Assembly: GCF_002113885.1 (NCBI RefSeq)
Contig: NW_018408918.1
Span: 62,001-116,919 of the forward strand
DNA length: 54,919 nt
Reading direction: 5' to 3'
DNA from: Mizuhopecten yessoensis
Taxonomy: Eukaryota
The position numbers and the translations under genes were made by a program. The notes under the pieces were generated by a model, which made no database searches, was not told the DNA's origin, and saw nothing but the letters and a program-made list of their open reading frames with translations. Each line of letters opens with the position of its first letter. Positions within the stretch are counted from its first letter, which is position 1. This document shows positions 7,913 to 51,960 of this stretch, piece by piece.

Positions 7913-8100
7913 ATTCCGTCTTTGCGTATTGCAGAGTTGTCTTCTCTTGTGAGCAGGGATTGATTGTTACGTCATTGGTTTGTGTGAGAAAATTACGTCG
8001 TTTTCTCAGAAATTGATGACGTTACTCTCACAAACAAATGACGTAACAATCAATACCTGCTCACAAGAGAAGATAAATCTGCAATACGAAAAGACGGAAT
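7913..8100. mobile_element. palindromic foldback MITE (~190 bp)
   Basis: attccgtctttgcgtattgcagagttgtcttctcttgtgagcagg... pairs with ...cctgctcacaagagaagataaatctgcaatacgaaaagacggaat; arms of roughly 70-80 bp. Confidence 0.8.
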
Positions 8101-22643: not shown

Positions 22644-23324
22644 CGAATCTGAGGCCCAAAGCCGCCCCTTGCACGTCGTGAATGATCGTTGGAGGGATGG
22701 CGTACCCTCCACATCCGCCCATATGGAGTTCAAAGAAAAAGAAAAATTCTGGAGGCAAGTACCTAGGCTTTGGGATATCGTGAGCATGGGTGATCCAGTC
22801 GTGCATTAACGTGGAGTCACAGCATCTGCCATAATTGATTGGCAGGTGGTCGTTATGGTTAAAGTAAAAAGCAAAGTAGCTGTTCGGATTGCTATCGCAG
22901 TTTGTGAACAGATAGTCTACACCATTTACCCTGTACCCCTGTTGATTTCGATTTTGCGCCACACTGACCGGCAGGAAACCCAAGTAGAGATAGGGCGCCA
23001 TCTGCTGGTGGTTGTATGGGTTGGCATATCCAGCATGTGTGTTGTACTGGAAGGATAGAGGGATCTTGCTGTAAGTTGAAATCTGTTCCATTTTCGATTC
23101 TTTTTGAATTCCCACCACGTTAATGTGACGTATCATCGCATGCGCCGTGGAGGTATACAGATCGGCGATGTCGACTTGTACTGATGTGGTGTTGATAACG
23201 TAGGTGTAGCCGTAATCGGCGTAGAAATCACAGTAAACCGTGAATGGCTCCTGCTTCCGGTTCATGATCTCGTAGACACCGCTTACGCTATGAGGGTTGT
23301 TAGCATATATTTCCTTGCAAGAAT
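22644..23324 (-). CDS. secreted FReD/GON-like + EGF protein, main exon (227 codons)
   Basis: ttttag|AT TCT TGC...TTC G|gtatgt, phase 1-1. Begins SCKEIY...SGVYEI...PFTVYCDF...GYTY, the motif that opens fibrinogen-related, COLFI and GON domains; the rest is unassigned. Confidence 0.88.
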
Positions 23325-30238: not shown

Positions 30239-30868
30239 ATATAAATTGAATAAATGCTGAAATTGTGTAAAATAAATTATCTATAAACGATTAAAAATTA
30301 ACATTTTATAATAAAACCATATACACATAGTAATTGCATGCAAGAGTTATCTTTCTTGAAAAACTTCACAGTAGTGAAATAGGTAGCCGTTTTCCTGAAG
30401 TATAGAAAAATGGACACATGTGACTCATTGACAAAAAAAACCTGAATTAATGCCTGGATTGCTTTGATATACTTTAATATTGAGAGAACACACTGTTCTG
30501 TCAATAATAATCATTCAATATTCATCAGTTTAAGATAAAACATTAAGATATGGGGAATTTGTGATACTGTCTCCCTACATTGGATTTTCAACTAGGGATG
30601 TACTTCCTATTTCCGTTTATCAATACACTCATTCGACCTTAAATCACTTTGCAACATTACAACTATGTCTCAATACATGTGTATCACAAATGTAGTTTAG
30701 TAATTAGCTCCGTAATATCCCACACCTTCCGTTAAATTGTCGTAGGCATTAGATCAGCAATATAACTTGGCATGTTCGTTTAAAATGTATATATTGCGTT
30801 GCTGTTTATTGATATACGCACTTTATTAACCTGATCAGTTTAGGAGACATTTTACTAATACCACGAGA

Positions 30869-31378
30869 ATGGATAAGGCATTTTATTTCTACCATGTCAC
30901 CTCTAAAGCAATCAGAACTAGACTTACAACAACAAAGGCACTGGTTCCACAGATCCACAGCCCAAGGTCTGAGTGGATGTGGCTCTTGGACTCAAAGTAC
31001 AAGAATAAGATTCCTAAGGGGGTCTGGTTCTGCTCCACACTTTACAACGGTGGCCTGCCAACCATCTCCCCGTATGGTACAGAGCGAGTCAGGATGCCCA
31101 TTGAAAAGGTTTTGGGCCAACTTGGTGGAGGTTTTAGCCTATATCATGCCAGGGACGCTCAGGTGCAAGCAAACACTTATGTCCGACTCATGGTAGTAAA
31201 GGATGGAGATGACTTTGATTGTTTAGAATACATGGAAAAAATTAATCCCAGAAAAAATGACTGGCTGCAGCTTGTTTCAAATTCGGAGTTTAAAGTTGCC
31301 AAACGACCAAAATGGGTGGAAATATATTATCCCTATGAAGTTGATATTACAGACGGCGAATGGGATAGTTTGGACTAG
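30869..31378 (+). CDS. PHYHIP C-terminal-domain-like, putative ADP-ribosyltransferase-fold protein, copy 1 (169 aa, intact)
   Basis: ATG-to-stop ORF conserved in four paralogues. Motifs FYHVT, LVP, GVWFCST, LPTISPYG.ER, YVRLMVV, WVEIYYPYEVDI are collinear with PHYHIP FYRN, LQP, GVFFSCN, PQDSPYGRWR, YAILVLA, LEIIYTEPVDL (recalled from memory). Confidence 0.85.
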   Translation: MDKAFYFYHVTSKAIRTRLTTTKALVPQIHSPRSEWMWLLDSKYKNKIPKGVWFCSTLYNGGLPTISPYGTERVRMPIEKVLGQLGGGFSLYHARDAQVQANTYVRLMVVKDGDDFDCLEYMEKINPRKNDWLQLVSNSEFKVAKRPKWVEIYYPYEVDITDGEWDSLD

Positions 31379-33574
31379 TAAGTATTGATAGCAATCATCT
31401 AAAAAAACAAAAACATACCCATTTTAATTTTAACATAAAAACCAGAAAATGTATTATTACACTAAACTTGTGTGCATTTGCAGTTTAATTTTTTAGTAAT
31501 AATGATTTCAGAATGGATTTCAGAACATTGTAATTGATAAACTCTTGTTTTTACAAATGTTAAAGGTGATATTGTTCTTCTCACAAAAGGAAGTAGTTGC
31601 AGATCGAACTTATTTTATTTTTTTGGCTGCGAATCTTTATTTATTTCATTTTTACTAGTGTTATTTTTTTCTCTTTTCTGTCTATCAAATTCGATAATTC
31701 TTATATTGTATGCACCCATTGCACCATATAGGACAGTTATAGATCTCTCTACTTCTTTATGTTTCCTTGAACCTTTCTTGGTAGCACCTCACTTTAAGTC
31801 TTAGTTTTATACTTTTGTCCAGTTTGGCAAATTTCAGTATTAAGGATAATTCAAACACTGGTTAACCCGTTGTCAGCATAATTTGACTGGATGGAGTAGC
31901 ACAGGGTGTCTTTCACTGGGTATTTCAGTTTGCAAAATGCATGGAATAACTTAGGGTGATATCTTTTTTGCCTTATCTATAGTTTAGAACTATCTTCGAA
32001 ATCATACTCATTGTTTAATCGAAAAAAAAGCTAACCTTTCACTGATCAAGAAATTTGCTGAGCAAACCGTGCATACTAGCATTAACGACAAATCGTACAT
32101 ACAAGAACTAACGAAAATAGGGCTCCCTTGTTAAGGAATAAAAAATAACCTAATACATTTATAAACGAAAAGTGAGACAACAACTTCAAACTATTTCAAT
32201 TAGGTATAGAATAAGTCCGTATGAAAAATGTTCATATATTAATTCTTGTATTTAAGAAATTGTATTGATAACCCGTGACGTGTGATATTTGCATGTATCC
32301 TTATGTGCACAATACTCCTTTTTCAAAATATGTTATGCATCACACTGAATACTCATGCTTTAAATGTAAATGGATTAAAGTTAATTGATTGCCAATTCAG
32401 AAGTAGAGAACATCAACGATAAATTACTTCTGGATAAAAATCGATCTTAAATTGAAATAGAGAGTGTTTTAGTAATGAAAGAGGAATATTTGCACATTGA
32501 ATTCAATTAAACATCTTCAATTTTCTTACAAAATTGTTCGAAAATGTATTCTCTTCATTATTTCATATTAAAGGTCACCGACAATACATGTTGGATGACG
32601 TCATAACATTTCTAAGCAGACGACAGCAATATTGACGACGACAACGATGACGATGATGGCGACGACGAGAATTGGATATCCTTTTAATGAAACACTAAGA
32701 GCCTCTGTTATCTTATATCTACCCACACGTATATGTATTTTAACAATTGATATGTAAATATGTCAGATATGTGTAACCTCTTGTGTAGATATGCATTCAA
32801 CTTGAAACATGAACTATTCATACAGACAAAATGGTGTTTTTATCTTAACGATACAAATACGATTTTTTCTGAAAGCTATGATAAATTACATTCCTACTTT
32901 CGTTATTTGTTATTTATTGTTAACCCGAATGTACCTAATTAAAAACGATTATTTCAACAAGACTGCATTGTACACGCTAAATTTTAATTGTATATCCATA
33001 TATATTTAAAATAAAATATTCAAATGCATTGGTTTTGTGTTTTGTCTGAGTCACTGCTAATTATATATTTTCCTATTTGTTATTCCAATATAACCATGTA
33101 CTTTGGGCTACTCTTTGAAATCTTCCGAAAATATTTGTTGAATCAGAGATTTATTTATAGCATCTGTTGGGGGAGCTTTGCTTGCATTACTCTCTCAAGC
33201 TACAGTTTAGTGAAACTATAATGTAATCGTTTTTTTATTTTATTTATGTCGGGTCAGTTGATAAGCTATCAATTTCAGTATGTGCTTTATAAATGCATAC
33301 CCTTACTTGTTCTTGTCAGCTTGGCTGTAATATTGGTCACCAATTCTCTAGCGTAAACAAAAAAATAGAGGTTTTTTTTTAAATCATTTTCAAAAAACAC
33401 GGTAATTGATTTTTTAATTTTAGATTTAAGATATCAACGGATTTCGTATGTGTGAAAACATTCTGTAACACGTTTGTTTATATCTGGTTTTTCTGACATA
33501 CTATATTATTGTTTAGTTCTATATCTGATTAATTCAAATACCTGTATAACAATATATTAAAAGGTGTATTACGT

Positions 33575-33693
33575 TTTGGTTTGGTTTGGTATGGTACCTG
33601 ACGACTGTCCTACGTAGGCCTTTAAACCTGCGACCCATTGATGGAGGACCAGTGGTAGCAGAATGCCAGACGCTTTAACCACATGGCCACGGC
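33575..33693 (-). mobile_element. internally deleted tRNA-derived SINE
   Basis: (GGTTT)n tail next to a head whose minus strand reads ccgtggccatgtggttaaagcgtctggc (A box) ... gcaggtttaaagg. Confidence 0.5.
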
Positions 33694-35820
33694 ATTACCG
33701 TATTACTCTGCATATATTACAAAATTTAATGGAAGTTTGAAGTAAAGTTTTTAGTCTTGTGCCCCAATGTATGAGTGAATATGACGAGGAAGGTCGAGTC
33801 ACTTCAGAATACTGTTATTCCCCCATCCTCCCTCTTATTCTGTTAAACAATTGTTGCTAAGACGATCACGAAGATATCGTAAAGACGTACTTTATATATC
33901 TGTTCCTTTCATCTATTTATTTTAAACAGTTGTATAACAATCTATTGAAGGTTGTTATGTTTTCCGTGGGTTACATCTGGAGGTGTGAAGGAAAGTTATT
34001 AATCGCTTGTACCCTGTTGATTGATTAGATGAGGCAAGATAAGATTGGGCTGCTTTGTTGCCCTATGGTTTCTTACTTTACTGAAATGCTCAAATACAAA
34101 TGAATGTTTGACGAATTGTATTTCAGGTCTAGTTGCAATGGCACCGAATTTCGAAAACCGGTGTGATATACTGTCCAATTTTTTTTTTTAATAATTTCGT
34201 TTTGGTCGTGTGTCAATAAGTATTTGATGCAAATGTTAAGACTTAGCAGTTGATGAAAAAGTACTTATTAAGTCCCGGCGGATGGAAATATCAATTCATG
34301 TCCAGAGAAAATTTCTTAAAATAGTTAGGAAGAAAAATAAAAAATAAAGTACACAGAGTTGCGATATTGGTGTGTCTTTACAGTAAAATTTAGGAAATGA
34401 TTATTCTATTTATCAATACCATAAGTTCTAGCTATGTTTTAGACAAGAATGTTTATTTTTAAATGACAATTTAGGATCATATTCGTTAAAGACAAAATAA
34501 ACAACAAAATAATGTGAAACATACAGTGAATATAAAAATAAATTCAAGTGAAAAATGTTCCAAACGTTGTACGGGTTATTTCTGTTTAACAGGTATGTGC
34601 CTCACAGCATTGAGTATCACTACTGTACTACTGCACTGGATCTCAGTGGTATGGGCATAGGTTCATACAGAATTTGGACGAAGTATGGAACCTAAATGAA
34701 CATTTTAATTGTCTGTAATTCATTAGTTAGTTCACTTTTTAAATTGTTTTCAAATGTTCAGTATTTTCATTTAACACTTTAAGCAATTATGTAGTAAATT
34801 ATGCATGGGAGAAAATCTCTGCAATATAATGATGCAATTCCCTATCCTTGCTTACTGCATATAATACACCAGTAAACAATACACAGATTAGTAAAAATAG
34901 AAGCAGAAACATAAAAAAAAATCAAACGAAAACAAAACTCGATCAAGACAAAAAAAATCATAATATAAGAATACTTTAGGAGTTGTTAAACTCGAACAAC
35001 TTGCATTAGTCGAATCTCCGTTTATATTAATACATAAACTGATTCATGACTGTCTAGTGATATACAAGAGGACATGATAATGGGTTTGAGATGGTGATAT
35101 TTCTTTTTTCAAATATTAAAATTGTTAGAAAACTGTTTTGGTTTATAGTCTATATTTTACAAATGCGACGTGTCGCCACAGTGGCGTCCTCATAGTATCT
35201 TATATTGTTCTTTACGTTTGAAGTCGACTAGCAGTTTATATTTCAAGCTAATGTGAACCAAAAGGAAACACAATGAATGTAACAATGACTAAAAAAATTA
35301 TACTGGTGAAACCTGTTAGTCATCCTTGTCTTTCATACTCATGGCTGTTTTCTTTATCATTAATCCATTGGTGTGGAGAGTGATAACGTAAATTTAAGAA
35401 ACACCTGTTTCCGGTATCCTGACCTACAAGACACAGACAGGAAATTGAGTTGATACACTTTCTGTTTACGTGTCCTGACTTTAAACAGATTGACATAGTG
35501 CAATGACCGATTTCAGGTCTGGAATTGTTAGGGTCAAATTATCTTCAGACGTTTTGTCTCTATAGATCATATATAGATGTAGATTTCTTTTGTAACTAAA
35601 TTTCATGCAAACAAGTAGTGTTTTGCATTGATTTTTTGCGCAAGAATGTTAGTGTACACTTCAAAAGGAAATAATGAACGTGCATCACTCACATAGTGTA
35701 GTGTCTAGTTCCGCAGTATCCTGCCCCCCTCTCCCCCCNGTTAATAGGTCATTGTGTTAACTTTATATATACACACTCGATTAAACAACCTAGGACTAAG
35801 GACTAATCATATACGAAAAC

Positions 35821-36330
35821 ATGGATATAGTACGACAGTTCTACCACGTCACTTCTCTATGCAAATCTCAAATCATATCAGCAAAAGCACTGATCCCCCA
35901 GGTTCACAGCCCATCGCATGAGTGGATGTGGCTTTTGGATTCCCAGTACAAGGAAAAGATTCCTACCGGACTCTGGTTCTGTTCAACACTGTTCAATGGT
36001 ATCCTACCGAACCAATCTCCGTATGGTGAAGAGCGCGTCAAGATTCCCATCGAAAATGTGTTCAGCCAACTTGGTGGCAAAGTCAACATATATCAAGGCA
36101 AGAATGCATTTGTTAGTGGCAACACTTACGTCAGACTAATGCTTGTTAAGGAGGGAGACAACTTTGCTTGCTTAGAACACATGGAGAAACTTAATTTAAA
36201 AGACAATGTCTTTTTAAAGTGTATTTCTGAGTCGCAGTTTCAGGTTCCCAAACGACCAATTTGGGTGGAAACGTTCGTCCCGTATGAAATTGATATTTCG
36301 GAAGGTGAATGGGACAAGGTTAACAAGTAA
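35821..36330 (+). CDS. PHYHIP_C-like putative ART-fold protein, copy 2 (169 aa, intact)
   Basis: Full-length paralogue of 30869-31378; FYHVT, GLWFCST, SPYG and WVE retained. Confidence 0.85.
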   Translation: MDIVRQFYHVTSLCKSQIISAKALIPQVHSPSHEWMWLLDSQYKEKIPTGLWFCSTLFNGILPNQSPYGEERVKIPIENVFSQLGGKVNIYQGKNAFVSGNTYVRLMLVKEGDNFACLEHMEKLNLKDNVFLKCISESQFQVPKRPIWVETFVPYEIDISEGEWDKVNK

Positions 36331-37014
36331 GTAAAAATAACAATCATCATAGGTAAAACATTGTAGAAAACAAAGACTCTGTGCATACACTGTTTCAGGT
36401 GAACATCGAAATATAGAAAATACACAAAGCTCATCAAAAATTTTGCGTGCAATTTCGTACCATTCTTTAATATAAGGGACTAAGTGCTGATTTCAGAATA
36501 TGTTTTTCAACAATGGACGCTTCCTACGTGGTTTGAAAACACATTGTCTGTTCGGGGAACTATAGATATGGGGACTTAATCAAACTATAAAAGATAAGAT
36601 TTGACTAAAAGATATGTATTCAGCATTATTTAAGTATGAGTATATTTTTATAATCTTGTTTTATATCTAAATAGAATTGTCTTTTAAATTATGGGTATAC
36701 ATAATGACTTATTAAAACAGCAAACGATCTTTAAAGCGTATCCATTTAAAGCAAAGCCAATAAGCAGAGCTTTACTCGTTTATATTCAATTATTGTGAAA
36801 GTTTTTTTAATTGTAGTTGATATGAAGCATATACGTGTTAAGAACTCATTTTACTAATTGTATAAGAAGGACTAATGGACAATCTGTATATCTTTCAAAA
36901 GTTTTTAGATCAGAGGTTGTATCTTAAAATATTCTCTCGCCCAAAGTCTAATTTCAATATGTAAGAAAATATCGGTTAAGATATTTATTAAGTAAATTGA
37001 CTACATAGTTAGAA

Positions 37015-37112
37015 CAAATAAGTATGTTAAAATGATAAATGAGTATATTAAAATGATAAATGAGTATATTAAAATGATAAATGAGTATATGAGTCTAATC
37101 AAATGAGTATAT
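37015..37112. repeat. 21-bp minisatellite (~4 copies)
   Basis: Unit aaatgagtatattaaaatgat. Confidence 0.8.
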
Positions 37113-40100
37113 TCAAAAGGTAATTTTAAACTATCTAGGTATAATGGAAAGATACATTGTTCGGAAGGAGACACAATGAAAAATGTTTTAATCGTTGTAA
37201 ATAAATTATTATTTCCACATCGAAATGAATTAGATATATCAAAATGTTTTCTGGGCAAGGATCGTTCGAAAATTGACTATCTTAATGATTTCTATATTAC
37301 AGGTTACTGTCGATGTAAAGGCTAAATGACGGGGAGAAAAAACTTCCACTACAAATTATGATACATTATCATATCAGGAACTACTCTTAATTAGTATCAT
37401 CAGATGACCGTTCAAGCTACCTCTATGACGTATTGCAGTGTTAAAGACGCCACATGCAATGCCTTAACTGATCCAAACCATGTGATTAAACCAAAAAGTT
37501 AATGTTTGATTCCATAGTGGTTCGCCGGCTTTTGTCAATACAGCACCATTTGTTTCGGAAACATTTAACAACTGATCGAATATAGCTGTATCCGCCATGT
37601 TTGTATGTTATATCCATATATTCTTCAATTAAAATACTCAAATGTATTGGTCTTGTGTTTTGTGTGAGTTACTCTGAATGAAATAGTCTCCGATAACTTC
37701 CCGACATATTACAGGTACTGATGATGATGGCGAGTACCAGTATTGGTCAATGTATTACATGTTCATAACGTGTTCTTTGATAAGCTATAACCAACAGTAT
37801 CTAAATTGAAAAAAAAACAAAAAAACATCCATGGTATTCCCTAAACCATGTAAAACTAGGTCAAATCAAAGTAATATCATGTCATCATAACGAGGACGTG
37901 GGGTAACAACAACAAGGCACGTTAATGAACACAATAAAAATGTCTCTATTGGCTTTAATCATCATCTTTGATCACCCAATAAGCTCGTAGTTTCCTCGAA
38001 TTTAAACTAAAACAGTACATATACAATCGATTTCAGTTCTCAGTTACAATACAATTGTAATATGAACAACAGAATGTTAAAAAGGTGTTGGTACCAGTGT
38101 ACAGTAGCGTACGGTAACCATTTGTGATATTTTTGTTCAATGAATAACCCCTGTAATATCATATGTATCAAAATGTAAAAACAAAATTTTAAATTGCATA
38201 CCCATGATGAAGTGGGCTATGTGGGCTTCATAATTTTTCAAGAAAAAAAGTTACATTTGGTTTGAGACTAAAGTTTTGACAATTTTCAACTCTGTGTCTA
38301 CACAACAAAGGCTAGCTTTTCAATAAGTCGATTTTTGCACAAATCCACTGGAATTAGCTAAACCGCGCATATTTCTGTTACAGAGTATGTGATATTTACT
38401 TTAAGACAGGTTTCAATAAATATAGTCCAATTTGCGAGAATCAAAATTTGTGTTAAAAATCGTTGTGTTTCTTTTTTTGCTTTTTTGTATGTGGTTACCG
38501 TGGTTCTCAAGTTCTAGATCTCGGGAAACTTGTCTGGAAACAATTCTTTTTCTAAAAGATGTATTTTATGAATCCACATTCAATGTGTATCAGAGACATG
38601 CCCTTCATATTTAGGATCATGCCAGTTCTATTGTACATTGCTACCTTATATTAATATAAAGTTCTATAATCTATTAGAGGTCAATAAATATATAACAAAC
38701 GATTGTTTTGTGAATTGTCCTCCATAAATTACTTCTGCAGTTGAAAGTTAAATAATTGTTCTCTTGTTTCCCAATACATGACCACATGTGATGACGTGTT
38801 TCAGGTCAAATGACCATTGCACAAAATCCTACTGTAAGGATAAATTAATTTGCTATTAGTTTTGCCAAACAATTATTACCACGAAAATCATTGTGGATAT
38901 AACAAATGAAAATAAAATCGACCTTTTCTGTAAGGACCAAGCCCTTTGTAAACAGATAGAGAAATGAATCGCATTACGTTCAGTGAAATGACGCCTCCAA
39001 GCTGTCATTACATGACAAAAATATTCATGGACATCGTGATTTGACTTTAGCTGTGTGGACCTGTGTGACCTTGCAAAGAAGTAAACTTATTGTACTGATA
39101 CTGTCCATATGAACCTGATTTATATCAATACTAACGAGGATTGCTCTGAAGATCATGACATTAGTGAGAGATGATGAACGCTGACAGACAACCTTCCTAA
39201 CACATTGTTCCAAGCTGAACAGGCGGGCTGTGTGAGTATGTATCTAAATGTATGTTTATTACACAGATTCTCGCTTAACAACTTTTTTTTATATCCTGGA
39301 CCAGGTAAAATGTTAGCTCCTATTTGCATTCTATACTTAAGTTCTGAACATAATACTCATGAAACGTCGTTTGAAAAGGCCATTGTGAATTTGATAGGAA
39401 TACAAATTGTGTGTTGTAAGTCAAGGTGTGCCTCACAGAAGAAAAGTAGTCACTACAGTACTGCCATGCTAGCATTTAGTGTTCAATATTAGCTGTTGTT
39501 GTTGTTAAGATCCAGTAGGTTATGACAAGGTCCAGCAGTTCACGAGACACAGCCGATGAGGAACTCATGTTATGTTAAGATGGCTAGAAATTGTATAATA
39601 GTTAGGAAGGTGGCATACTGGCGATCTCGTTGTTGCTACAATCCGAACTCCATTTGCTCCATAGGAACTTTGTTATGTAACGTCTGTGTAAGCAATTAAA
39701 TGTATATGGATCACATTTAGTGTCATATACATAGATATAGCAAGTTAAATTATACGTAACAATCCCTTTAGACCAGAAATAGCTAAGGCGATATATCATC
39801 GTGTTATTTCAAGAAATCAAATTAGTTATAGCGTATCATCAAAACCAAATACATTGAAATGATTAATATAACTCCTTTTATGATTATGAGCAAAATGATT
39901 AACAAATTACCTGAAATTGATTTGCAAATGCATATATTTTCAACATGAGTAAATTATTTTGGTATAAAATTTTAAGTAGTTGTTAAATTATGCATGAGAA
40001 ATCTTTTAGATATAATGCTTCAATTCCCTATCCTTGCAGTACTATAAATATTGCGCTGGTAAACACACAAAGAATAACAATCATGGTGATAAGAATAATA

Positions 40101-41136
40101 AGACTAGTTTACCTTAGTTGTCGGTTAACTCGGACTCACAGGAGAATCGACCTTTCGTATATATTCATGCCCTTATTAAATCTGGTATGACTAACCTATC
40201 CAACAGTCTGGAGACTTGGGTTTGAGATTATGATTTTTTTTATAAGATATATTTTGTTTTATAATATATGATATATATTTTTCAAATGCATAATGACACT
40301 TCTCGGTCATCAGGGTATTTGCCTCTTTTCCATTCGATGTATGGCGACTAACAGTCTATAATTCAGATCAAATTGACACTTAATCCTCTTGGTTGAATCG
40401 AAAATAATTACTGAATGTAAGGACGCTCAAATAACTAGTATACAGTGACAATTGATTAGCTTGAACTCGTCTGAGTCGAGCATTCTTTCATTAAGCCATG
40501 TTCTGCATACTTATAGCTGTCTTACTAATTATTGATACATTGTATGTATTACGTAAACGTTGTCATAAGACATTCCTGAACCCGGTATCCAGACCTACAA
40601 GGACTGAGGTCACAATTAAATGCTTCCGGGTTCAGTACCCACGAATGAAGTCCCTTAGGAATATAGGTACTTTAGTAAAAACTATACTATGCCTCTTAGA
40701 ACTTGGTGTTTGCGTAAAAGTTTGGTGTTAAAATACTGTGGAGATATCAATCTAACAATTTCTGTGTCATATTTTTATATTGTGCCTTAATTTTTTGTGC
40801 AGGGTGCTGTGTGAAAAGTCCTGTGTTTACCTCTACTCCTGACCCGGAAGTTTCAAGTTTATTTCTGACATTGGTGACACATGCAGACGATTATCTCAAG
40901 ATAAAGGCCAACATGCTATGTTGAAATTTTTATATTTTACTCCCAAGATGTTGCTCTTGACCAGGTTAGATGGAAAATTGACTATCGGATATTGGGAATT
41001 TGTTATGAAATTAAATGTTACAATGAAACATATAGTAAAATTAAATGTGGTCTTAGTACTACAGACAGGATGGTGACACACTACATGTTTACCTCCCCTG
41101 ACTCGAAAAAGACGAAGATATTGTCATGATCGATCT

Positions 41137-41233
41137 CAATCTCTACCCAGAGTTGCCGTTCCTTACACTCACCTAGAGTGTGAGTAGGGGCAGTGTAAGT
41201 GAGTGTAAGGAACGACAACTCTTGATAGAGATT
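41137..41233. mobile_element. ~97-bp palindromic MITE inserted in the locus-specific repeat
   Basis: aatctctacccagagttgccgttccttacactcac ... gtgagtgtaaggaacgacaactcttgatagagatt. Confidence 0.75.
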
Positions 41234-42516
41234 TGATACATCTTCTATCTAAGTAAAATCTCGATGCACATTGAAATGAAGACAAAAAAATAAATAAAGT
41301 ACATGTACTCAAACCTACAGCGTTAACTTATATTGTTTTAGCTGCTTGTAAAAATGACTACATTTGACATGTGATGGCGTTCTCGCTTTCGTAAACTTTT
41401 TGTACGAACAGAACAGATTTGTTCCAATATTGAGTTGATTAAATAGCCATTCCAGCTAGCTAAAGCCACATTCACTTAGTATGGGAAATGATGGTTAACG
41501 CAATCGAAAATACTCTGTTGATTATATTATCGCTATTATACATTTATGTTTATTACTACTCCACACTGTAATGTTTCACTGTCGGTCAATCGAAATCAGC
41601 AATACAGTAATGCAGTGCTAAAAAATACACTGATAGTAACATAAAACATGATGACGAGTTTTTTATACCTATTTTGAGGTATCGTCTCAGCCTTGTTTGT
41701 GTTTTCCTGCCTCCATCGGTTGTACCTCTTTACTTCCTGTTGTTACATGTATGTTCATTTGAAACACGGTTGTCTCTTACTTACTTCATTGCCATACGCA
41801 GGTGACCTTTCAACCATCACTCAGGTGAAGATGGCTTTTAGGATTAAATAATATTTCAAGTAGATCCGCTGTTTTATTCGTTTACCAGTATTTATATGAT
41901 TATGGATGTAATATATGCAGAACATGTTTTGTTTCAAACTCTAAAATGGTGTTAATAAAACATAATGCATCTAAATTGACTATGTTATGCGATTTAAGTT
42001 TGCAAAACAAGTTGGTACTCAAACTTTGTTCATAGAAATAATTTTTCTAAACTAACAATAATATACGATATAGGATTGCAAATCACGTTTAGTATCGATC
42101 TCGGATAATTTGTCAATAACAATGTTCCAAAATTGACAATCACATTTTGCAAAACATTTTATATAGTTTCTTTCACTAACATGTTAATTTCATTCCGAAA
42201 AGAAGTGATACGAATGGAATTCGTACGAGCATGTCTTTCGACAAAACTTGTTCTCAATAAATCATCATTAAACGCACTATCATTATGTGTGTGCTCAGAA
42301 TGTAATAATGCAAAAAGTGTTTAATGAATGTGTATCCCTTACATAGTTAAGTATATAGTTCCGTATTAGTCTACCCTTTAGATAAATTGTTGAAACGATT
42401 TTGGATCGATTATTTAAACTGCATGTTCGTGTACAAAGCGTCATTGTGATGTATTTTGTCCATACATACTTGGCTAGCCTGACCGGTTTCAGAGTAATCT
42501 TGCTAATTCGACGAAC

Positions 42517-42897
42517 ATGGAAAAAGTACGATTTTTGTACCACGTCACTTCTCCTGTGTGCAAGTCTTCAATCCAAAAAGCTAGCAAACTTCTTCCCAAG
42601 ATCCACAACCCAAAGTCTAAGTGGATGTGGCTTTTGGATCCCAAGTACCAGGACATGATTCCAAAGGGGGTCTGGTTCTGCTCCACACTCTACAAAGGGG
42701 ACCTGCCAACCATCTCCCCGTATGATAAAGAGCGCGTCAGGATACCAATTGAAATGGTGTTGGGCAAACTTGGCGGCAAAATCAAGATTTATCTTGGCCA
42801 GGAAGCGAATGTTAAAGATAACAGATATATCCGAACCATATCTCTGCATACACATTTCTCAGCTGAAAAATTAATTCAAAAAAACAAACACAGTTGA
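42517..42897 (+). pseudogene. PHYHIP_C-like putative ART-fold gene, copy 3, 3'-truncated
   Basis: Open and homologous to codon ~106 (NRYIR, nt 42834), then unrelated sequence. It lacks the last ~64 aa, including WVE. Confidence 0.8.
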
Positions 42898-45426
42898 TTT
42901 TATTTTTAGATGAATGTCTTTATTTCCTTATTTTTTATTTATTCTAAAAGGTAGCATGGTGTATCTAAGTGTTTATGATTACATTATTAAATCGTCTGCA
43001 TACCAATAGAAAGTCTGTATTAAGTCAGATGGTTTTTAATCAAAAATTGTACAGTTGAACCTCGTCATCTCGAGGTCGGCGAGATCATGAAACACTTAAA
43101 GCTACTGAGTATTAGAGATAAGGGAGTTTCCTTGCTTGGTTTAATCTATATTCACTTGGCAAACGTCCAATTTTAACACGTTCATAGATTCATGTTAATA
43201 TCTGCTTTTGAGTGCAAAATGCTTGACATCAAAGAAGTAAGCAAAATTTTCCTTTATCACCTAAAGCTGACTTCCGTTCAATTAGTGGCTTCTATTTGCA
43301 AATTGAATCACAAAAGCATTGATAAAAACAGATAAAACAAAAATAGATAAAAAAAATCTGTTTATAGAACTAATCAAATGAAAAGTTGTAATAAATTAAA
43401 ACTAAATTACGCAAAAAATTGTTCCATCGTATAAAGTCAGTTATGTTAATACCCCTAAACGATATAGAATTGCCAATTTAAGTTTATAAGTAGATCAATA
43501 AATACTATTAATACTTTGCTTAACTCATTGATAAGTCTCGCGTTTAAACCTTTGCAGTTTTAACCTATGTGAACCCCACTGATTTTGTTTCTATCTATAT
43601 CAATAAGTAAATTGAAAGCCGAGTTTATCAAAATAGCATTACCTTCGGGGAAAATCACACGAAACGTAAGGAGCAAAAATTTAAATAATTTAAATCGATG
43701 TAATTAAAGAATGTTTACCTCATTCAATAATATTATATCTCCAAATGTTTTCTAAACAACGGTTGTTTGAAATTGATTGTCATATTTTTTTTAACAATCT
43801 AGATTACAAATGACGTCGGACACCATGTATCACTGGAATATTAATCTTGACCCAATGGGTTCGAGTCAGCGGGATTTTACTTTATGCATTTTGACAGAAG
43901 ATGAATACAAAAAGCAAATTACAAATATGAGTAGCCTCTTGTATGAATTTGCTTTGTTTACATTTTGAATTGTCCTTACTGACAGAATGGTGTTTATTAG
44001 AAGTAACTACCCTTGTGGTCAATTTATCAACTAATGATTGATTTATTATTAAATTAACTACTACTGCTTCTTCTACCTGTGTTCACATGTTGCAGTTGAT
44101 TCGGTATGCAAGTGCTTGCTCCGAATATCACGACTTCCATAAAAGATATCGACTGCTGATGGTCAAACGTATCACACAGGTTTTCTAAAGATGCAGGTTA
44201 ATGAAGCCTATGGTCAAGCTGTATGGTCATCATCGTGATATCATAGGGAAACATGTTATTTCTTTGTATAATATGAAAGTTAAGATAATGCTTATAAGTG
44301 TGCCTTGTGGATGTGTTATCACTACCCGAATTTTTCGATACGAGGACGAGACATAACTTGATTTCGACTAAGAATTAAATGGCGGGTGTCATCGATGAAA
44401 CAGGATACGCTTACCCTTCTCGAACATTTTAAGTAATGGTCAAACAAAACTCGCAGAACATACAGATTATGACAGTTGCATAGGACATAATGACGGGTGT
44501 TCACACTTATGTTAGAAGGACGAAACGGCTGTATGGTGCATTGCAATTCGGTTTTGGAATACGGTATGAATTACCTTCTGTAGCCGTGCTCACACGTGTG
44601 TGTCTAACGTTTATCTGCCTATCGGTGATGTCTTCCTTGTTGTATAGTCATGACAATCATGGACATTTTGTTCTCTTGCCAACTTTATTGACATACACTG
44701 GCGACTACACATTTTAAACAGCACTCAGAATACAAGAAGTGATCTTAAAAATATGTCGAATTCTATAGACGGCTTAGCATAAAAACTACACAGACATGCC
44801 ACAACATTGTCATGTAATGGCGAAAGGGGTGTGTGGAGTGTGACGTTTTAGACTTAAACGAATCATTTACAAAGTATTAATATAGTTTTTTATCTAAATA
44901 TCAAAAACATCTAGGGCTCAAAATTATGTTAATAAGCATAATGCTTCTAAATTGACTATACTAAACGATATCAGTTCGCAAATCATGATTGGTCTCAACT
45001 CGTATAATTTTACTAATGAAAAACGCTTCCAAATTAACAAGTCTATTGGAATGTTTTTAAATCTTAGTTTGCAAAACAAATTATTCTTTTTTATAATTAT
45101 AATTTTGTAACATGTATTTTATTAAAAAAGTAGTGAAATGTATTTATTTTCGCACAAAAATGTATGTCCTTAGCTCTCAATAAGTCATGCATTGACACAT
45201 TTCAATTATGTGTTAATTTTGTAGGTTTTAATGTACAATTGTATACTTAAAAAGGATATAATGAACGTGTATAACTTCGGTATATAAGTATTTAGTTCCG
45301 CTATATCCTACCCTTCAGATGATATAAAATTGCATGTTCGTGTCCGATTCGTCATTGTGTTCTCTTTTAGTCATACATACTTGATTAGCCTGATCGACTT
45401 TAAAGTGAACTGTTTTAACGACGAAC

Positions 45427-45939
45427 ATGGACAAAGTACAAAAGTTTTACCATGTCACTTTACCTTTCTTTAAAACTAAAATTACTAATGGGCACAAATT
45501 GATCCCCCAGATCCACAACCCATCACAAGAGTGGATGTGGCTTTTGGATTCCAAATACAAGAATAAGATTCCGAAATTAGTTTGGTTCTGTGCAACGCTT
45601 TACAACGGTGACCTGCCAAACATCTCTCCGTATGGTAAGGAGCGCGTCAGGCTGCCCATTGATAAGCTTTTGAGACAACTTGGTGGCAAAGTCAACGTTT
45701 ATCGTGGAAAGGATGCACAGGTCAACACCAACAAGTACATCCGACTGATGCTTGTCAAGGAAGGTGACTACTTTGATTGCTTAGAACATATGGAAAAACT
45801 GAATTTCGAAGACAATGACTTGTTGAAGTTCATTTCTGATTCTGAGTTTGAGGTTGCTAAACGACCAAATTGGGTGGAAATAGCTTGCCCCTATGAAGTT
45901 GATGTTACAGAAGGTGAATGGGATACCCTTAACAAGTAA
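45427..45939 (+). CDS. PHYHIP_C-like putative ART-fold protein, copy 4 (170 aa, intact)
   Basis: Aligns ungapped with copy 1, about 65% identity by hand count; FYHVT, VWFCAT, SPYG and WVE retained. Confidence 0.85.
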   Translation: MDKVQKFYHVTLPFFKTKITNGHKLIPQIHNPSQEWMWLLDSKYKNKIPKLVWFCATLYNGDLPNISPYGKERVRLPIDKLLRQLGGKVNVYRGKDAQVNTNKYIRLMLVKEGDYFDCLEHMEKLNFEDNDLLKFISDSEFEVAKRPNWVEIACPYEVDVTEGEWDTLNK

Positions 45940-48900
45940 GTAATTATGTGTCAAACATTTAAATAAAAACATTCTAGAAATCAAATTGTGTGTGCATACA
46001 GACTTTTTGGTTCAATATAGAAATTTAGAAAGTAAACATAGTCCTAAAGTGGTGAAGATGTGCGCATTCAAAATTGCAAGCTGAGGAGAAAGAGCTTCAG
46101 CAAGGAAAAGGTCGCTACTGCATCAGTTATAGTTGCTCAGGGAGTAGACTAGGGTTTTTTTACTGAAAAAAAGTAACGAATTGATCTTTCTCGAATTTCA
46201 TATGAATGTTCCCTTGATTTTGAGAGCTCAAGTTTGTTATTACCTTTCTCAAATTTCATATATAATTTCCCCATGGACAATAGTTTTCCATGTTCCATTC
46301 TGGGATTTATCGAAGAAACACGATTGCAACCAGGCAGTCATCTTTGATTTGGACAGTTCAAGTTTGCTTTGCTATTTATGAAGTACTTTAAAGTTGAGCA
46401 TGTTTCGTTGAGACTGCTAAATGAAAAAAGATAACCACCAAGCAGCCATTGAATGTTGACAATTCAAGTGTGTTATCATTATTTATCAATATAGACTGGA
46501 CAGATCTTTCTTATATGTAGGTTTCCCTCAGGCTATAGTTATTTTTAACATAAACGTTACATATCGTTCTCAAATTTAACTTAGATAAAAAGAATGCGTA
46601 TCAGTTAATTTCAGTTTGAAACTATTGTTCATTTCACTGAATGTTTGTGCATAAATGAATAAATGGAATAAAGTGACTTGACCACCGTCTGTGAAAAAAC
46701 ACTTTACAAAAATCTATCTACGACTAATATACCTTAGGAAAAACACATTTCCTGGAATAGGTTTTTATCTTTGTGAATAAAATAATGTTTCCGTTTTCAA
46801 TTAAAGTAATATCATCCAAGGATTTTTCGAATATGTTCGATTGAAAATTGATTGTCTTCATTATCTTAATATTATAGGTAACACAACAGAGCAAGGTGAA
46901 TGTCGTAATGGATATTTCTAAGTGGATGACGTCTTCTTGAGGAGTAAGACCAGTGGATAACGACTACATGAAAAACAAAGGACATACGCTATTGAATTTA
47001 TTATCATACATACATAAACTGCCTTTTAAACTTTCTATCATCTGACTTTCGCGACATTAGCACAGCTCGAACTACTCTTCTGTCTCACCTGATCGACATA
47101 TGACAATGTCGAAAATACCTCGGTTTCGTACAATGTACATGCATTCTTGGGAATTTCATTATGGACCCCATGAGTTGGAGTTATCTGGGCTGTATTCATT
47201 TCAAATGACATTAACGATTGAAATATAAGCATAGTCTCTTGTATAGGTTACTATTCAGCTTACATCCCGTAGTGACCTTTCGGGCGGCAGATTATTGCAT
47301 ATTTACTAGTTAACAATGAGTGACTGCCGTGAACTGAAATCACGTGATCTCTCATGCTAACTTCATGACATCTTGCATTGTTTATGATATATCGTCACAT
47401 GCAACGTTTCAACGGGTTTGTGCCATGTGGTATAATCGAATCTAAAGGATTCCTTTGTAGTTACCGGCTTATGTTTTCGAATATTACAAAAAAATAGTCG
47501 TACTATAATAAACCTACTTGAAAACAATACGTTAAACAGTAACACATTGTAACCGCTTTCTTTCTTAGTTATACTCATATCTTGTTCAATTAAAATACGC
47601 AAACTGCATTGGTCTTGTGTTTTGTGTGAGTCATTCTAAATCACAACCTTCTATTATTTCGTGTTATTCCAAAATGACCGAGTACTTTGGGACAGTCTTC
47701 GATATCATCTAAAACATCTTAGGTATTAATGAACCTTTTAATTGAGTATCTGTAGAAGTGCTTAATGCACTATTATGATTAGCTGCTATTTATTGAGGAT
47801 ATTTTATGTGACTACCTTTTAATAACAGTAGTTTGTAAATGCTAAACCTTAGTCTTTGATATTAGCTTCACTGACTTTTATTATCAATTGTCTAACGTTA
47901 ATGAAAAAAGTGACTTATTTAAATCAATATGCTAACTGATAAAAACGAATTACATTATGGAATTATACATATGGGCGTAATAATACTAGCTTTATTCACA
48001 ATCCATGACTTGACAAATGATAGAAATAAGCGGGGGTCACATTGGAGAAGAAGACGAAAACCCTTCCGGTGAAATACGTGTATTCACTTCCGGTTTTGTT
48101 TGCTGGATGGTACTTTGTCCAAGTGTTACTTCAGTTCCTGTTGCCATTTCGTTTTGACTTTAATTTAGAATGTTTACTGTATTAAAAAACATTTCAGATC
48201 GGTTTAGTATTCATCGTTTCATTGACTTATACAATGCAGACTAAACGCCTGCAAGTTTTAGGATTGGTTCACAATTTTTTTTTTTTAAATAATATGATTG
48301 CACCGTTTGGTTTGTACACCTAAAACTGACATCAGACTATACACGTACGTTAAAACCTTTCGTTATATATTAAAATATCATTTCTTACTAAATCTTATGC
48401 ATTTTATCTCTTGAAACGACCACGTGGTATGTAGCTGTCCAAAGAATAAAAGTGATGTCACATATTTATGCGATATTCCATTCGATGTTTCTGTAGGCGA
48501 TGTAATAAACACAAATGCTATCGAATCTTGAATGAGTAAGGTTGTGAACAACGATTTACATGATTTTAACACAGTAAATCACAATCAAAGGAGTGATATC
48601 TTTTTGTTGCAATTATTAATTTCGCTAATACCGTTTCGTCTCTTTAGATGTTTCTTTCAATGTGATAAGTACATAGCTATTTCAGACGGTCTTATAACGC
48701 CAAATATAAAAAATCTGCTGTTACTCTTTGTAAAGATATTTCTTGTTTATTTTATTTAACCCAATGTTCAAGCTGAAATGAGTTCACAATAGAACGCTAT
48801 CTTTCAACACTGATATTTCTTTCTGTAGTATTTGAATTTGTCATATTGCAATAAAAAACGAGACAAGAGAATACCCAAGTGTCGACAATACAGTATTTTA

Positions 48901-49237
48901 AACTAAAACTCGATAGCATAGGCAAAATATGAACAAAGGAGGGCTTTACAGTGTAAACGACTCTGTACAAGACTGGGTTTCAAACTAATTAACACAATGT
49001 TAAAGGAAAAATTGATTACCAAAGTTTATGTAAATGAATAACTAGACATAAAAGTGAGTCATAGGAATAAATTGCAAACGCTGTAGGGGTGACTTCCCCT
49101 CGTCAGTATTTTTGTCTGTCTCAAAGCCTTTATGGTGACAATTTTCCGTGAATTCCCAGGATTCAGATGCTGTACCCGTACGTGAGATTTCAGTGTGGTG
49201 TGAATCAGGTTATGGCGGAGGTGTGGCAACAATAACC

Positions 49238-49878
49238 TGTATTTAATGTTAGGATATACCTCTTTAACATATAGTGATGTATTTAATGCTAGGATATATA
49301 TCTTTAACATAAAGTGCTGTATTTAATGCTAAAATATACCTTTTTAACATTAAGTGCTGTATTTAATGCTAGAATAAACCTCTTTAACATATAGTGATGT
49401 ATTTAATGCTAGGATAAACCTCTTTAACATAAAGTGCTGTATTTAATGCTAGGATATACCTCTTTAACATATAGTGCTGTATTTAATGCTAGGATATACC
49501 TCTTTAACATAAAGTGCTGTATTTAATGCTCGGGTATACCTCTTTAATATATAGTGCTGTACTTAATGCTAGGATAAACCTCTTAACATATAGTGCTGTA
49601 TTTAATGCTAGGATATACCTCTTAACATATAGTGCTGTATTTAATGCTCGGGTATACCTCTTTAACATATAGTGCTGTACTTAATGCTAGGATATACCTC
49701 TTTAACATGTAGTGCTGTACTTAATGCTAGGATAAACCTCTTAACATATAGTGCTGTATTTAATGCTAGGATATACCTCTTAACATGTAGTGCTGTATTT
49801 AATGCTAGGATATACCTCTTTAACATACAGTGCTGTACTTAATGCTAGGATATACCTCTTTAACATATAGTGCTGTAA
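49238..49878. repeat. 40-bp minisatellite, ~16 copies
   Basis: Unit tgtatttaatgctaggatatacctctttaacatatagtgc, head-to-tail with no spacers. Confidence 0.95.
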
Positions 49879-51530
49879 TTTTGAAGCCTTGATGTATTAT
49901 TAATGATGCGCAAGTAAACAATACCAAGATAACATAGAGAAAGAAAACCCAAACATACTTGATAAGGGTACTGAAGATAACAATAACGATTCATTGTTAT
50001 TTTCATTTCACTAATACATTATTAGTGGGTAGAATCATATGCTTGATTTTGTATTGGAAATTTGTAATTTTGTTTCCGTCATACAGTTAATTGTATCTTG
50101 CCATCATCTCAAAAACAGATTTCAATTTTCCTTGGCTATATTTAGAATTTATCATGACACGTTCAACAAACTTTCAATACATAAATCCTGTTTGCTTAAC
50201 ATGACCCAAAGAATATCCTCCTTTCACTTCGTATTTAAACTTAATTATTTTCTATTTTGTTCCTATACAGCATACGCTTGCTTTCACTTTTTATCAACCT
50301 TACTCTCCAATGAAGATGTTTTAATACTATTCCTCTTAATATGATCTTTTCTTTTCTGAAATGTGAACACATAATGTTTATAAATTCCACATACTTGTCT
50401 CACACACTCTGATTAGTCTAAAATATCGAAATACGTTTGAAATTAATTGTCGTTTAATATAAATAACGATTATTAAAACAATATATATAATAGCACTCAG
50501 AAAGCCAAATAAGCCAATCACTGTGCCATATGGTTGTTTTATCAATTAGGGAATCATCACCGGTACTAACTGATTCTCCTTATGAAAATTACTGCAGATA
50601 AAGACCATCGAATAGCTATACATTTGGTTGTTCAGTCACATATTGCTATTGGCGTACTTCCAACTGCCCTAGCATGCACAAACTTGTTTGTAAGCTGTAA
50701 GCGCATTTAATCTGATAAATTAGAAATTAAATTTAATTAATTAATTCTGGCAAAACACTGTAGCTATGTAGTTACCTTGCATTTAAATCAAAACATGTAT
50801 CCTGATTGAAAGCATTTTGCTCGGTCATCGGCAAACATTTTGTAAATGAGTCTCTTCCAAACTATTCATACATATCCTGTACAATTCCTGTTTGCGGTAT
50901 ATATCTCCTTTACTCAAAGTGCTGGTAAAGAGTACATATTACGTATGAAATAAACACTGTGTATGCAACTAACAACACATGTCAATAAAACTAACGCTTC
51001 TAAATTGACAATTATATACGATCATATTGTGCAAATGATGTTTATTCTCGACCGGGAAAATTACTTATAAAAATAATTGTTCCAAATTAACTTCAATTTG
51101 CATTATAAGTTTCTGCTCGACCACGAATAAAGATAAATCTTCAAAATTGACTTCAAGGTACCATCCATTTTTTGCAGAACATGGTTGTCCCCGAACTCGA
51201 ATGAAATAATTCTTCCAAATTGACTTAAATTCGATTATGTTTTGCAAAAAACATCATATACTTCTGTTTGATCTAGACTAAATTGATAGAATGAATTTTC
51301 GCACAAGCACGTTTTCGGCAAATTGGTTATCAATAAATTATTTGTAATCGCTATAATCGTGTGTTAAATTTGCATATAATAATGTATACTTAAAAAGGAT
51401 ATACTGAATATTTTAACTAGTTTCGTAATATTCTGTCCTTCCGATAAGTTGCAGATGTTTGTGTACCATTCGTCATTGTGTTGATTTTTATTCATACATA
51501 CCTGATCAGTCTGTCCGGTTGAAGACGAAC

Positions 51531-51960
51531 ATGGATAAAGTATGAATTTTCTACCACCTCATTTTTTCTCCCTGTAAACCTAAAATAAAAGATGAACGGA
51601 AACTGATCCCTCAGATCTACAATCCCCTCGGATGAGTGGATGTTGTTTTTGCAGCCCGAGCACAAGGAAGCGATTCCTAAGGGGGTCTGGTTCTGTTCAA
51701 CACTCTACAACGATGACCTGCCAACCGTCTCTCCGTACGGTACAGAACGGGTCAGGATACCCATTGGAAATGTTTTGGGCAAACTTGGAAATTTCAGCAT
51801 ATACTGTGGAAAGGATGCCAAGGTCAGCAACAACTCGTATTTCCGATTCATGATAGTACGGGAGGGAGACTACTTTAAATATCTGGAGCACATAAAAAAA
51901 GCTTGATCTTTCCAACAATAACATTTTGAAATATATTCATGGTGAGGGGTTTCATATCCC
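51531..51960 (+). pseudogene. PHYHIP_C-like putative ART-fold gene, copy 5, pseudogene
   Basis: ATG GAT AAA GTA TGA (stop at codon 5), +1 frameshift near 51625 and a second in the A-run near 51900. Homology continues (LDLSNNNILKYIHGEGFHIP) and ends abruptly at 51960, before KRP.WVE. Confidence 0.85.

Follow-up and report, generated by a model that had tools for sequence, protein, structure and literature searches.

Introduction

ADP-ribosyltransferases (ARTs) are classically split into two classes by an alternation of His and Arg on the first strand (beta1) of the fold. DarT and DarT1 are ARTs that modify thymidine or guanosine in single-stranded DNA and belong to the DarTG and DarT1-NADAR toxin-antitoxin systems, and CARP-1 is a precedent for a DNA-directed ART in bivalves. 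On the side of the erasers, NADAR proteins hydrolyse ADP-ribosyl-guanine and -cytidine in nucleic acids and serve as antitoxins of the ARTs DarT1 and YarT (PMC11543638, PMC11125620, PMC12945103). In this study, we analyzed a stretch of 54,919 nucleotides (nt) from the genome of the scallop Mizuhopecten yessoensis (contig NW_018408918.1, positions 62,001 to 116,919; here called the window), which carries a tandem array of small genes related to the C-terminal domain of the vertebrate proteins PHYHIP and PHYHIPL. A previous reading of this DNA from its letters alone (the sequence-only reading) had described the array as stand-alone genes with an ART-type H...W...Y...E signature.

For PHYHIPL, the function has been stated as not elucidated, and the FN3 domain alone was discussed (PMC7953787). 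In the library that we searched, no paper linking PHYHIP or PHYHIPL to ADP-ribosylation was found. What NADARs do in animals, molluscs among them, has likewise been stated to be unknown (PMC11125620), and products of the pierisin/CARP-1/scabin/ScARP type are substrates removed by NADARs (PMC12945103). A further described pair is YarT-YbiA, a myxobacterial ART toxin with a NADAR-family antitoxin, the toxin being a minimal H-Y-E ART fold in its AlphaFold model (PMC11125620). Here, we report an array of His-type stand-alone genes with RNA support, a check of the residue register against known ARTs, a second structural model (that of an Arg-type family member), and a gene pair of PHYHIP_C and NADAR, which are the new elements of this work.

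A tandem array of five paralogues

Searching the window by tblastn with the three intact open reading frames (ORFs) as queries revealed exactly five same-strand paralogues, three intact and two broken, and none elsewhere in the window. This is the number given by the sequence-only reading, and the motifs that it had quoted (Y8-H9-V10-T11, L25/P27, W53-F54-C55-x-T57, S67-P68-Y69-G70, and W149-V150-E151) were found at those residues of copy 1. All five copies lie on the forward strand. Copy 1 (positions 30869 to 31378) is an intact ORF of 169 amino acids (aa) with H9, G51-V-W53-F54, S67-P68-Y69-G70, R73, and E151. Copy 2 (35821 to 36330), also intact and 169 aa long, has H9, G50-L-W52-F53, S66-P67-Y68-G69, R72, N129, and E150. 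Its numbering, which from residue 13 on equals that of copy 1 minus one, is used below. The third intact ORF, copy 4 (45427 to 45939), encodes 170 aa; its residue at the near-invariant position Gly50 is Leu, in contrast to the Gly shared by 66 of 70 family members.

The two remaining copies are damaged. Copy 3 (42517 to 42897) is truncated; its 126-aa ORF is homologous to the family up to about residue 106 (position 42834; residues 1-106/108 in tblastn), departs from it after ...RYIR, and continues as unrelated sequence to its end at 126 aa. It also reads SPYD instead of SPYG, i.e., Asp at the near-invariant Gly69. Both this substitution and the Leu of copy 4 had been overlooked in the sequence-only reading. 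Copy 5 (51531 to 51906) is a pseudogene with an in-frame stop at codon 5 and a frameshift near codon 32 (approximately position 51625), and its homology ends at about residue 124.

The intact copies share 58 to 65% pairwise identity and encode proteins of about 170 aa without a signal peptide or any other domain, and all three retain the four signature residues. The product of copy 2 is 100% identical to that of NCBI LOC110440301 of M. yessoensis (protein P0001). Pairwise ratios of nonsynonymous to synonymous substitution (dN/dS) among the three intact copies were 0.25 to 0.36 at dS values of 0.7 to 0.95. As judged from these ratios, the intact copies are old duplicates under purifying selection. 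Since copy 2 is identical to an annotated gene product and the dN/dS values are low, the array is not a chance occurrence.

Membership in the PHYHIP_C family

A match to the Pfam profile PHYHIP_C (PF19281) had been predicted, and copy 2 indeed scored 33.7 bits against a gathering cutoff of 27. Copies 4 and 1, which are 58 to 64% identical to copy 2, scored below the cutoff with 22.4 and 14.9 bits, respectively. No Pfam match to an fn3 domain was detected in the array ORFs, which begin at beta1 of the domain. Among 1.8 billion representatives searched exhaustively with HMMER, 77 matched, of which three bacterial multi-repeat proteins (P0012, P0034, and P0071) were rejected as spurious repeat matches. 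We then worked with an alignment of 70 relatives that includes the window copies and four matches of the search that had linked copy 2 to LOC110440301. PHYHIP_C was matched by 60 of the 70 at an E value of ≤10 and by 54 at ≤0.01 (best, 6e-35). Those relatives that are named belong to the scallop genera Ylistrum, Argopecten, and Mizuhopecten and to a fish. Scans of all 70 members with PADLOC and PHROGs gave scattered single matches only.

In this alignment, the columns G50, F53, L57, P63, S66, P67, G69, R72, Y103, and N129 are near invariant. The residue at beta1 (column 9) is His in 45, Arg in 13, and Asn in 2 sequences; all array copies have His, and the Arg type accounts for 13 of 60 aligned members. 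An aromatic residue stands at column 52 in 64 of 70 sequences (Trp in 38, Phe in 21, Tyr in 5), followed by Phe at column 53 in 63 of 70. Column 68 is Tyr in 48, Phe in 14, and His in 6 (68 sequences together), and column 150 is acidic in most of the 67 sequences that cover it (Glu in 51, Asp in 8). His or Arg at column 9 occurs together with Glu or Asp at column 150 in 48 of the 58 sequences with a residue at both columns.

In the ESM Atlas, clusters of chordate hypothetical proteins share the fold of copy 2 at a template modeling (TM) score of about 0.72, and in one of these chordate clusters 100% of the members contain an AIG1/GIMAP GTPase domain. A bacterial cluster containing DUF2971 matches the copy 2 fold at a TM score of 0.53.

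Structural neighbors of two predicted models

An ART fold had been predicted for these proteins by the sequence-only reading. The AlphaFold2 model of copy 2, computed with the family alignment as input, reached a predicted local distance difference test (pLDDT) score of 97.4 and a predicted TM score of 0.91, and its structural neighbors were almost exclusively ART-fold proteins, at low Z scores. An exhaustive VIA search of 48,161 PDB representatives placed at least 46 ART-fold proteins among the top 50 matches, led by Tpt1/KptA (Z = 5.1 over 78 residues), AvrPphF (4.8), DarT1 (4.7 over 113 residues), and CopC (4.3 over 130 residues). Further ART neighbors were scabin, PARP1/2/3/4/10/13/15/16, tankyrases, Arr, LT, pertussis toxin, pierisin, TccC3, and Rhs ART toxins; the cholera and diphtheria toxin folds were also among them. 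When the top 1,000 Foldseek rows were realigned, the first 39 were all ARTs, before any non-ART row appeared. Weak rows for GH11/GH12, jacalin, and ecotin in the Foldseek searches of the PDB and BFVD were rejected as noise (TM scores of 0.1 to 0.3), and the search against BFVD gave nothing significant.

Comparable results were obtained with a second, independently built model, that of the Arg-type relative P0063 (pLDDT of 92.3 with a reordered alignment), for which 29 of the 30 matches with Z of ≥2 were ART folds. In a structure-free feature search with a language model, the nearest named clusters outside PHYHIP_C were a phage DarT/PARP cluster (0.93) and Arr (0.90). Together, these searches make homology of the PHYHIP_C domain to the ART fold highly probable.

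Residue register against known ARTs

We next mapped the conserved residues onto ART motifs, working from the end-points of structural alignments and not from residue-level alignments. The catalytic residue numbers used (PARP1 H862/E988, exotoxin A H440/E553, cholera toxin R7/E112, and DarT E160) follow the literature. PARP1 residues 858 to 1007 align with model residues 5 to 169, which puts H862 on H9 and E988 on E150; PARP2, PARP3, tankyrase-2, and PARP10 have the same offsets and the same positions. For exotoxin A (residue 436 with model residue 5), H440 falls on residue 9 and E553 on residue 148. For cholera toxin and LT (residue 1 with 3), R7 falls on residue 9 and E112 on about 149, and for Thermus DarT (179 with 169), E160 falls on residue 150. 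In the P0063 model (PARP1 residue 858 with 29), H862 falls on R33 of the invariant Y-R-N.

As a second method, the family was compared by hhalign with four PARP catalytic domains, each encoded in one exon of the scallop genome, in one planned comparison. In the local register, FYHVT lies opposite LFHGT, and GLWFCSTL opposite GSYFAKSA (P = 0.026). Global hhalign was uninformative and greedy extension unreliable, and both were set aside. The H...W...Y...E register of the sequence-only reading thus holds in part: two methods assign H9 to the ART His and G50-x-W52-F53 to the G-x-Y-F motif, while the Glu is placed by end-points alone.

A conserved gene pair with NADAR in distant relatives

In all three informative metagenomic contigs, an Arg-type PHYHIP_C gene adjoins a NADAR gene within 100 to 300 nt, in two orientations. 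On contig L046, PHYHIP_C (8001-8630, forward) and NADAR (8728-9360, reverse; E = 3e-28) are convergent, as are PHYHIP_C (275-928, forward) and NADAR (1117-1680, reverse) on L057; on L050, PHYHIP_C (6001-6585, forward) and NADAR (5044-5718, reverse; E = 2e-27) are divergent. Two further metagenomic contigs of only 1 kb each show no neighbor within that length. Pairwise identities are 30 to 42% among the three PHYHIP_C proteins and 39 to 44% among the three NADARs, and the other flanking genes differ. Because of these low identities, the differing flanks, and the two arrangements, we conclude that the pair persisted while the sequences diverged deeply and the orientation changed. This adjacency is the strongest functional clue, and it comes from distant Arg-type relatives.

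The three contigs are gene dense, with a G+C content of 44 to 53%. The PHYHIP_C matches found on them by Pfam may be nonmetazoan, so that the family could have a broader range than has been supposed. An alignment-based search for related loci found none in viral or metagenome contigs. In the scallop genome, multi-exon genes with NADAR domains lie at C5059:274418-287410, in two loci about 10 kb apart, with a fragment on C80534. They would be candidate erasers if the array proteins are writers.

The NADAR partner also bears on the idea that the array proteins act as glycohydrolases and deplete NAD+, in the manner of Tne2, TNT, and some defense effectors. An ART-like NADase, Tne2, is among the structural neighbors, the proteins are small and have no obvious substrate-recognition domain, and expansion by birth and death would suit an effector in a conflict. 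The NADAR partner, however, fits the product of a transferase and not the depletion of NAD+, and it is transferases (DarT, scabin, CopC/OspC3, and PARPs) that give the best structural matches and those of greatest length. We consider such an activity very unlikely.

Proposed activity

We favor, with moderate confidence, the reading in which the products of the intact genes are small, cytosolic, NAD+-dependent ARTs of a new and very divergent clade. Binding of NAD+, the catalytic activity, the functions assigned to single residues, the acceptor, and any biological role are inferences. The domain itself would be a very divergent ART fold with His9 on beta1, G-x-[W/F/Y]-F on beta2, a following S-P-Y-G loop, and Glu150 on a late strand. 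NAD+ would be held in the cleft between the two halves of the sheet, His9 and the aromatic residues would grip its nicotinamide-ribose end, and Glu150 would activate the N-glycosidic bond. ADP-ribose would then be passed to an acceptor in the cytosol or nucleus, for which a base or phosphate of DNA or RNA is the likeliest candidate. A nucleic acid is the favored acceptor because of the NADAR link, because DarT, Tpt1, and scabin, which are minimal ARTs acting on nucleic acids, are the nearest structural neighbors, and because some paralogues are fused to zinc knuckles (see below).

Weighing of the evidence

Several observations weigh against this reading, the first of which concern the fold. 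Z scores do not exceed 5.1 for copy 2 and 3.5 for P0063, which is under the tool's typical best for unmatched models, and the tool itself cautions that values under 8 may be due to a common arrangement. Foldseek against the PDB gave nothing significant, with probabilities of ≤0.25, its weak rows including DarT, a diphtheria-toxin homologue, and OspC3. In the PDB, neither sequence nor profile searches gave a match even at an E value of 10, and a Pfam scan of the 70 members returned no ART family even at E ≤ 10. Because every Z score is low, the case for the ART fold rests on the near-exclusive enrichment of one rare fold rather than on an individual match.

With no match at Z = 6 and neither sequences nor profiles giving a significant connection to an ART family, the likeness could in principle be a chance one, of a common split beta-sheet arrangement in proteins whose function has nothing to do with NAD+ or ADP-ribose. 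ARTs, however, make up a tiny fraction of the PDB representatives searched, and for two models built independently they nonetheless occupy almost all rows. Furthermore, the His/Arg and G-x-aromatic-F motifs fall in register, the independent feature search points to DarT/PARP and Arr, and the adjacency to NADAR is conserved. We therefore judge a chance likeness to be improbable.

The second group of objections concerns catalysis. Vertebrate PHYHIP is known only as a binding partner. The hhalign probability was only 1.9%, and its greedy extension, of negligible confidence, puts WVE on the C-terminal YPEY of PARP and not on the catalytic strand; because WVE is paired elsewhere there, Glu150 was assigned from structural end-points only. 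The residue after the His is Val, Ala, or Asn and not the Gly of PARPs and diphtheria toxin. The best-conserved residues of the family (S66, P67, G69, R72, Y103, and N129) are not classical ART catalytic residues. About 15% of the family, including both zinc-knuckle fusions, are without an acidic residue at position 150, so that part of the family is probably noncatalytic. As to the gene context, the NADAR link is seen only in Arg-type microbial or viral-like relatives and not in the His-type scallop genes, and the scallop NADAR exons (contigs C5059 and C80534) are unlinked to the array (C5591).

These points bring up an ART-derived pseudo-enzyme, i.e., a binding module for protein, nucleic acid, NAD+, or ADP-ribose, comparable to PARP13, the TASOR pseudo-PARP, and vertebrate PHYHIP. 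The low Z scores and the strongest conservation lying outside the classical H-Y-E residues would agree with this, as would the loss of the Glu in the zinc-knuckle paralogues P0041 and P0011 and the Leu of copy 4 at Gly50; PHYHIP and PHYHIPL, too, are described only as interacting proteins (PMC7953787). Harder to explain for a pure binding module is the joint retention of His/Arg and Glu/Asp counted above, and the conserved de-ADP-ribosylating neighbor implies that a modification is being written. Moreover, the three intact copies keep all four signature residues under purifying selection. A pseudo-enzyme is therefore an alternative that we take seriously but consider rather unlikely, and an active transferase remains the reading that we prefer.

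Transcription and gene structure

Raw RNA reads of four public scallop runs (X20, X22, X23, and X24) were mapped to positions 30600 to 36400. The coding sequence (CDS) of copy 1 was covered at a depth of about 5 to 25 in X23 and X24, which come from two studies; X20 and X22, both from a third study, had zero depth there, and copy 2 reached a depth of only about 1. Coverage of copy 1 starts in the bin 30794-30987. An intron of 1,196 nt with GT..AG borders (31378 to 32573, forward strand) begins within the stop codon of copy 1 (TA/G, the slash marking the exon border), and the joint from 31377 to 32574 is supported by 22 reads in X23 and 32 reads in X24. The spliced mRNA restores TAG, and the protein remains 169 aa long. 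Exon 2 is a 3' untranslated region (UTR) at 32574 to 33125, with RNA depth over 32540-33121 and an approximate 3' end.

Self-blastn showed that a downstream element, corresponding to this 3'-UTR exon and located 1.3 to 1.6 kb 3' of the CDS, is common to copies 1, 2, and 4. Positions 32933-33125 align with 47512-47709, and 32991-33076 with 37609-37694. The element of copy 2 (37587 to 37694, forward), a probable 3' exon, aligns with 47548-47641 and 32991-33076; that of copy 4 (47512 to 47709, forward), likewise a probable 3' exon, aligns with 32933-33125 and 37587-37679. The splice donor of copy 2 (AACAA/GTAAGT) overlaps the stop codon in the same arrangement as in copy 1. Because of this overlap, the NCBI model of copy 2 is 173 aa long, with LLSM added from the downstream exon, an extension of four C-terminal residues that is known from the database protein P0001 only.

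Upstream, a conserved region of about 190 nt detected by self-blastn (30677 to 30868, forward) is a putative promoter with a short 5' UTR of copy 1. In the same comparison, positions 30677-31128 aligned with 42328-42776 upstream of copy 3, and the matching upstream region of copy 4 (from 45240) aligned with that of copy 5 (from 51383). The ATG of copy 1 is preceded by several in-frame stops, the nearest 17 codons away, and no RNA joint entering the CDS of copy 1 from upstream was found in the four runs over the mapped interval. Since there are upstream stops, no upstream joint, and an intron within the stop codon, we conclude that these are two-exon genes with the full protein in exon 1. They are thus stand-alone genes, as had been supposed, and not exons of an FN3-containing protein, the outcome that the sequence-only reading had listed among those speaking against it.

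A read pile-up at 30600-30646 was considered as an upstream exon of copy 1 and rejected; its varied loose ends (30630-30646) are absent from the window, and this coverage, seen in all four runs, is a repeat shared with transcripts from elsewhere. Within the 3'-UTR exon of copy 1, reads of two runs showed a joint at 32765-32786 that goes back 22 nt, suggestive of a duplication polymorphism of this length. At several fixed positions, e.g., C>T at 31354, run X24 departs from the assembly, and these differences look allelic. A single N at 35739 ends a C-rich tract 82 nt upstream of the ATG of copy 2.

Further arrays and fused paralogues

The lineage expansion claimed by the sequence-only reading was borne out by several further arrays in the scallop genome, for which all copy counts are lower bounds. 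At C2286:11733-117013, there are at least about eight His-type copies, several of them frameshifted; several are split at about residue 91 to 98 by apparently shared frameshifts and are either pseudogenes or assembly errors. At least four His-type copies lie at C5434:1317265-1368664, and the His-type relatives on C2286 and C5434 are 37 to 51% identical to copy 2. C845 and C1812 carry single copies; a "578-aa open frame" at C1812 was rejected as an artifact of an N gap. Arg-type genes form an array as well: at C4809:650155-872005, at least nine PHYHIP_C genes, each a stand-alone single ORF of about 230 aa, lie on one strand, with the motifs HFYRNK, GLFFS, NNPFL, and VEIFYTEDV. Around the Argopecten orthologue, no further copy lies within 10 kb.

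The family in the scallop thus evolves by birth and death, a pattern that would fit a role in conflict and is no proof of one. An immune or antiviral role would be speculation, hinted at by the run-specific expression, the gene turnover, and the fish AIG1 fusion cluster.

In two relatives, the domain is fused to CCHC zinc knuckles: P0041 (M. yessoensis LOC110463133, with seven knuckles) and P0011 (Argopecten irradians). The equivalent of Glu150 is lost in both, being Ala in P0041 and Phe in P0011, and they are probably noncatalytic, nucleic-acid-binding derivatives. As evidence for a nucleic-acid-directed enzyme they were rejected because both lack the Glu; they provide a nucleic-acid context at most.

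Other features of the window

Between copies 4 and 5, a tandem repeat occupies 49237-49877, with a 40-bp unit (158-bp higher-order unit) in about 16 copies of 91% identity. Just downstream of the pseudogene copy 5, positions 53061-54812 comprise a non-LTR (long terminal repeat) retroelement with an ORF for a reverse transcriptase (RVT_1, E = 3e-25) and, after it, an ORF of 152 aa. Upstream of the array, on the reverse strand, a 209-aa ORF without a Pfam match lies at 22636-23265.

Discussion

PHYHIP and PHYHIPL are conserved, brain-expressed vertebrate proteins, and an ART fold with a retained His/Arg, aromatic residue, and Glu gives a concrete hypothesis for their function. The PHYHIP_C-NADAR pair ties the family to reversible ADP-ribosylation of nucleic acids and makes it a candidate for the maker of the substrates of animal NADARs. 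The scallop stand-alone proteins, with about 170 aa, a CDS in a single exon, and no accessory domains, are the simplest members for biochemistry and crystallography.

A much wider reading can be put forward tentatively, although in its full breadth we think it unlikely. It spans the His-type scallop genes, the Arg-type invertebrate arrays, and the microbial or viral-like NADAR-linked genes, and it would make the whole PHYHIP_C superfamily, possibly including human PHYHIP and PHYHIPL, an unrecognized clade of active ARTs that modify nucleic-acid bases. Its members would be the writers for the widespread animal NADAR erasers, expanded in bivalves through birth and death as cytosolic effectors against viruses or mobile elements.

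Among known proteins, PHYHIP and PHYHIPL are the homologous ones. Their C-terminal domain shares the fold (TM score of 0.66 over 161 residues between the scallop protein and a vertebrate PHYHIP cluster in the ESM Atlas), and the PHYHIP_C blocks G-x-aromatic-F, S-P-[YF]-G..R, Y-V-x-L, N-P-F-L, and W-x-E-x-F are collinear with the scallop proteins. In contrast to PHYHIP proper, the array proteins have no FN3 domain and consist of the domain alone, with about 170 aa compared to the 221 positions of the model. They also have YHVT (His) where PHYHIP proper has YRN (Arg), and they are tandemly expanded.

The PARP catalytic domain, an H-Y-E ART, has its beta1 His and its G-x-Y-F in register with FYHVT and GLWFC, at a similar spacing from His to Glu. 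PARP1, 2, 3, 4, 10, 13, 15, and 16 and the tankyrases are neighbors across model residues 5 to 169, at Z scores of only 2.6 to 4.0. The scallop proteins differ from PARPs in that they have no helical regulatory domain, no Gly after the His, and Trp in place of the first Tyr, and the PARP profile (PF00644) matched none of the 70 members. Scabin is a neighbor at Z = 4.2 to 4.3 over about 100 residues, and pierisin-1 at 2.8 over 99 residues. The enzymes of the pierisin/CARP-1/scabin/ScARP group are R-S-E ARTs (ARTC), several of which are secreted or carry lectin domains, whereas the scallop proteins are of the His type, without a signal peptide and without detectable sequence similarity to that group.

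YarT is bacterial and belongs to the HYD1/Rhs-toxin subclade. It is likened to PHYHIP_C by the logic of its discovery, with no claim of homology: like the metagenomic PHYHIP_C proteins, it was a small uncharacterized protein beside a NADAR/YbiA gene and was recognized by its ART-fold model.

Unlike DarT, the scallop genes are spliced, come from a eukaryote, and have no hydrolase gene as a partner. The DarT profile (PF14487) matched none of the 70 members at E ≤ 10, so that the relationship is a structural one only, and a search with this profile gave no match in the scallop genome or in control genomes. DarT and DarT1 are nevertheless among the best and longest structural matches, with Thermus DarT at Z = 5.0 (113 to 128 residues) and Escherichia coli C7 DarT1 at Z = 4.7 (113 residues). 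DarT is also a small single-domain ART, and DarT1, like the microbial PHYHIP_C genes, has a NADAR neighbor (PMC11543638).

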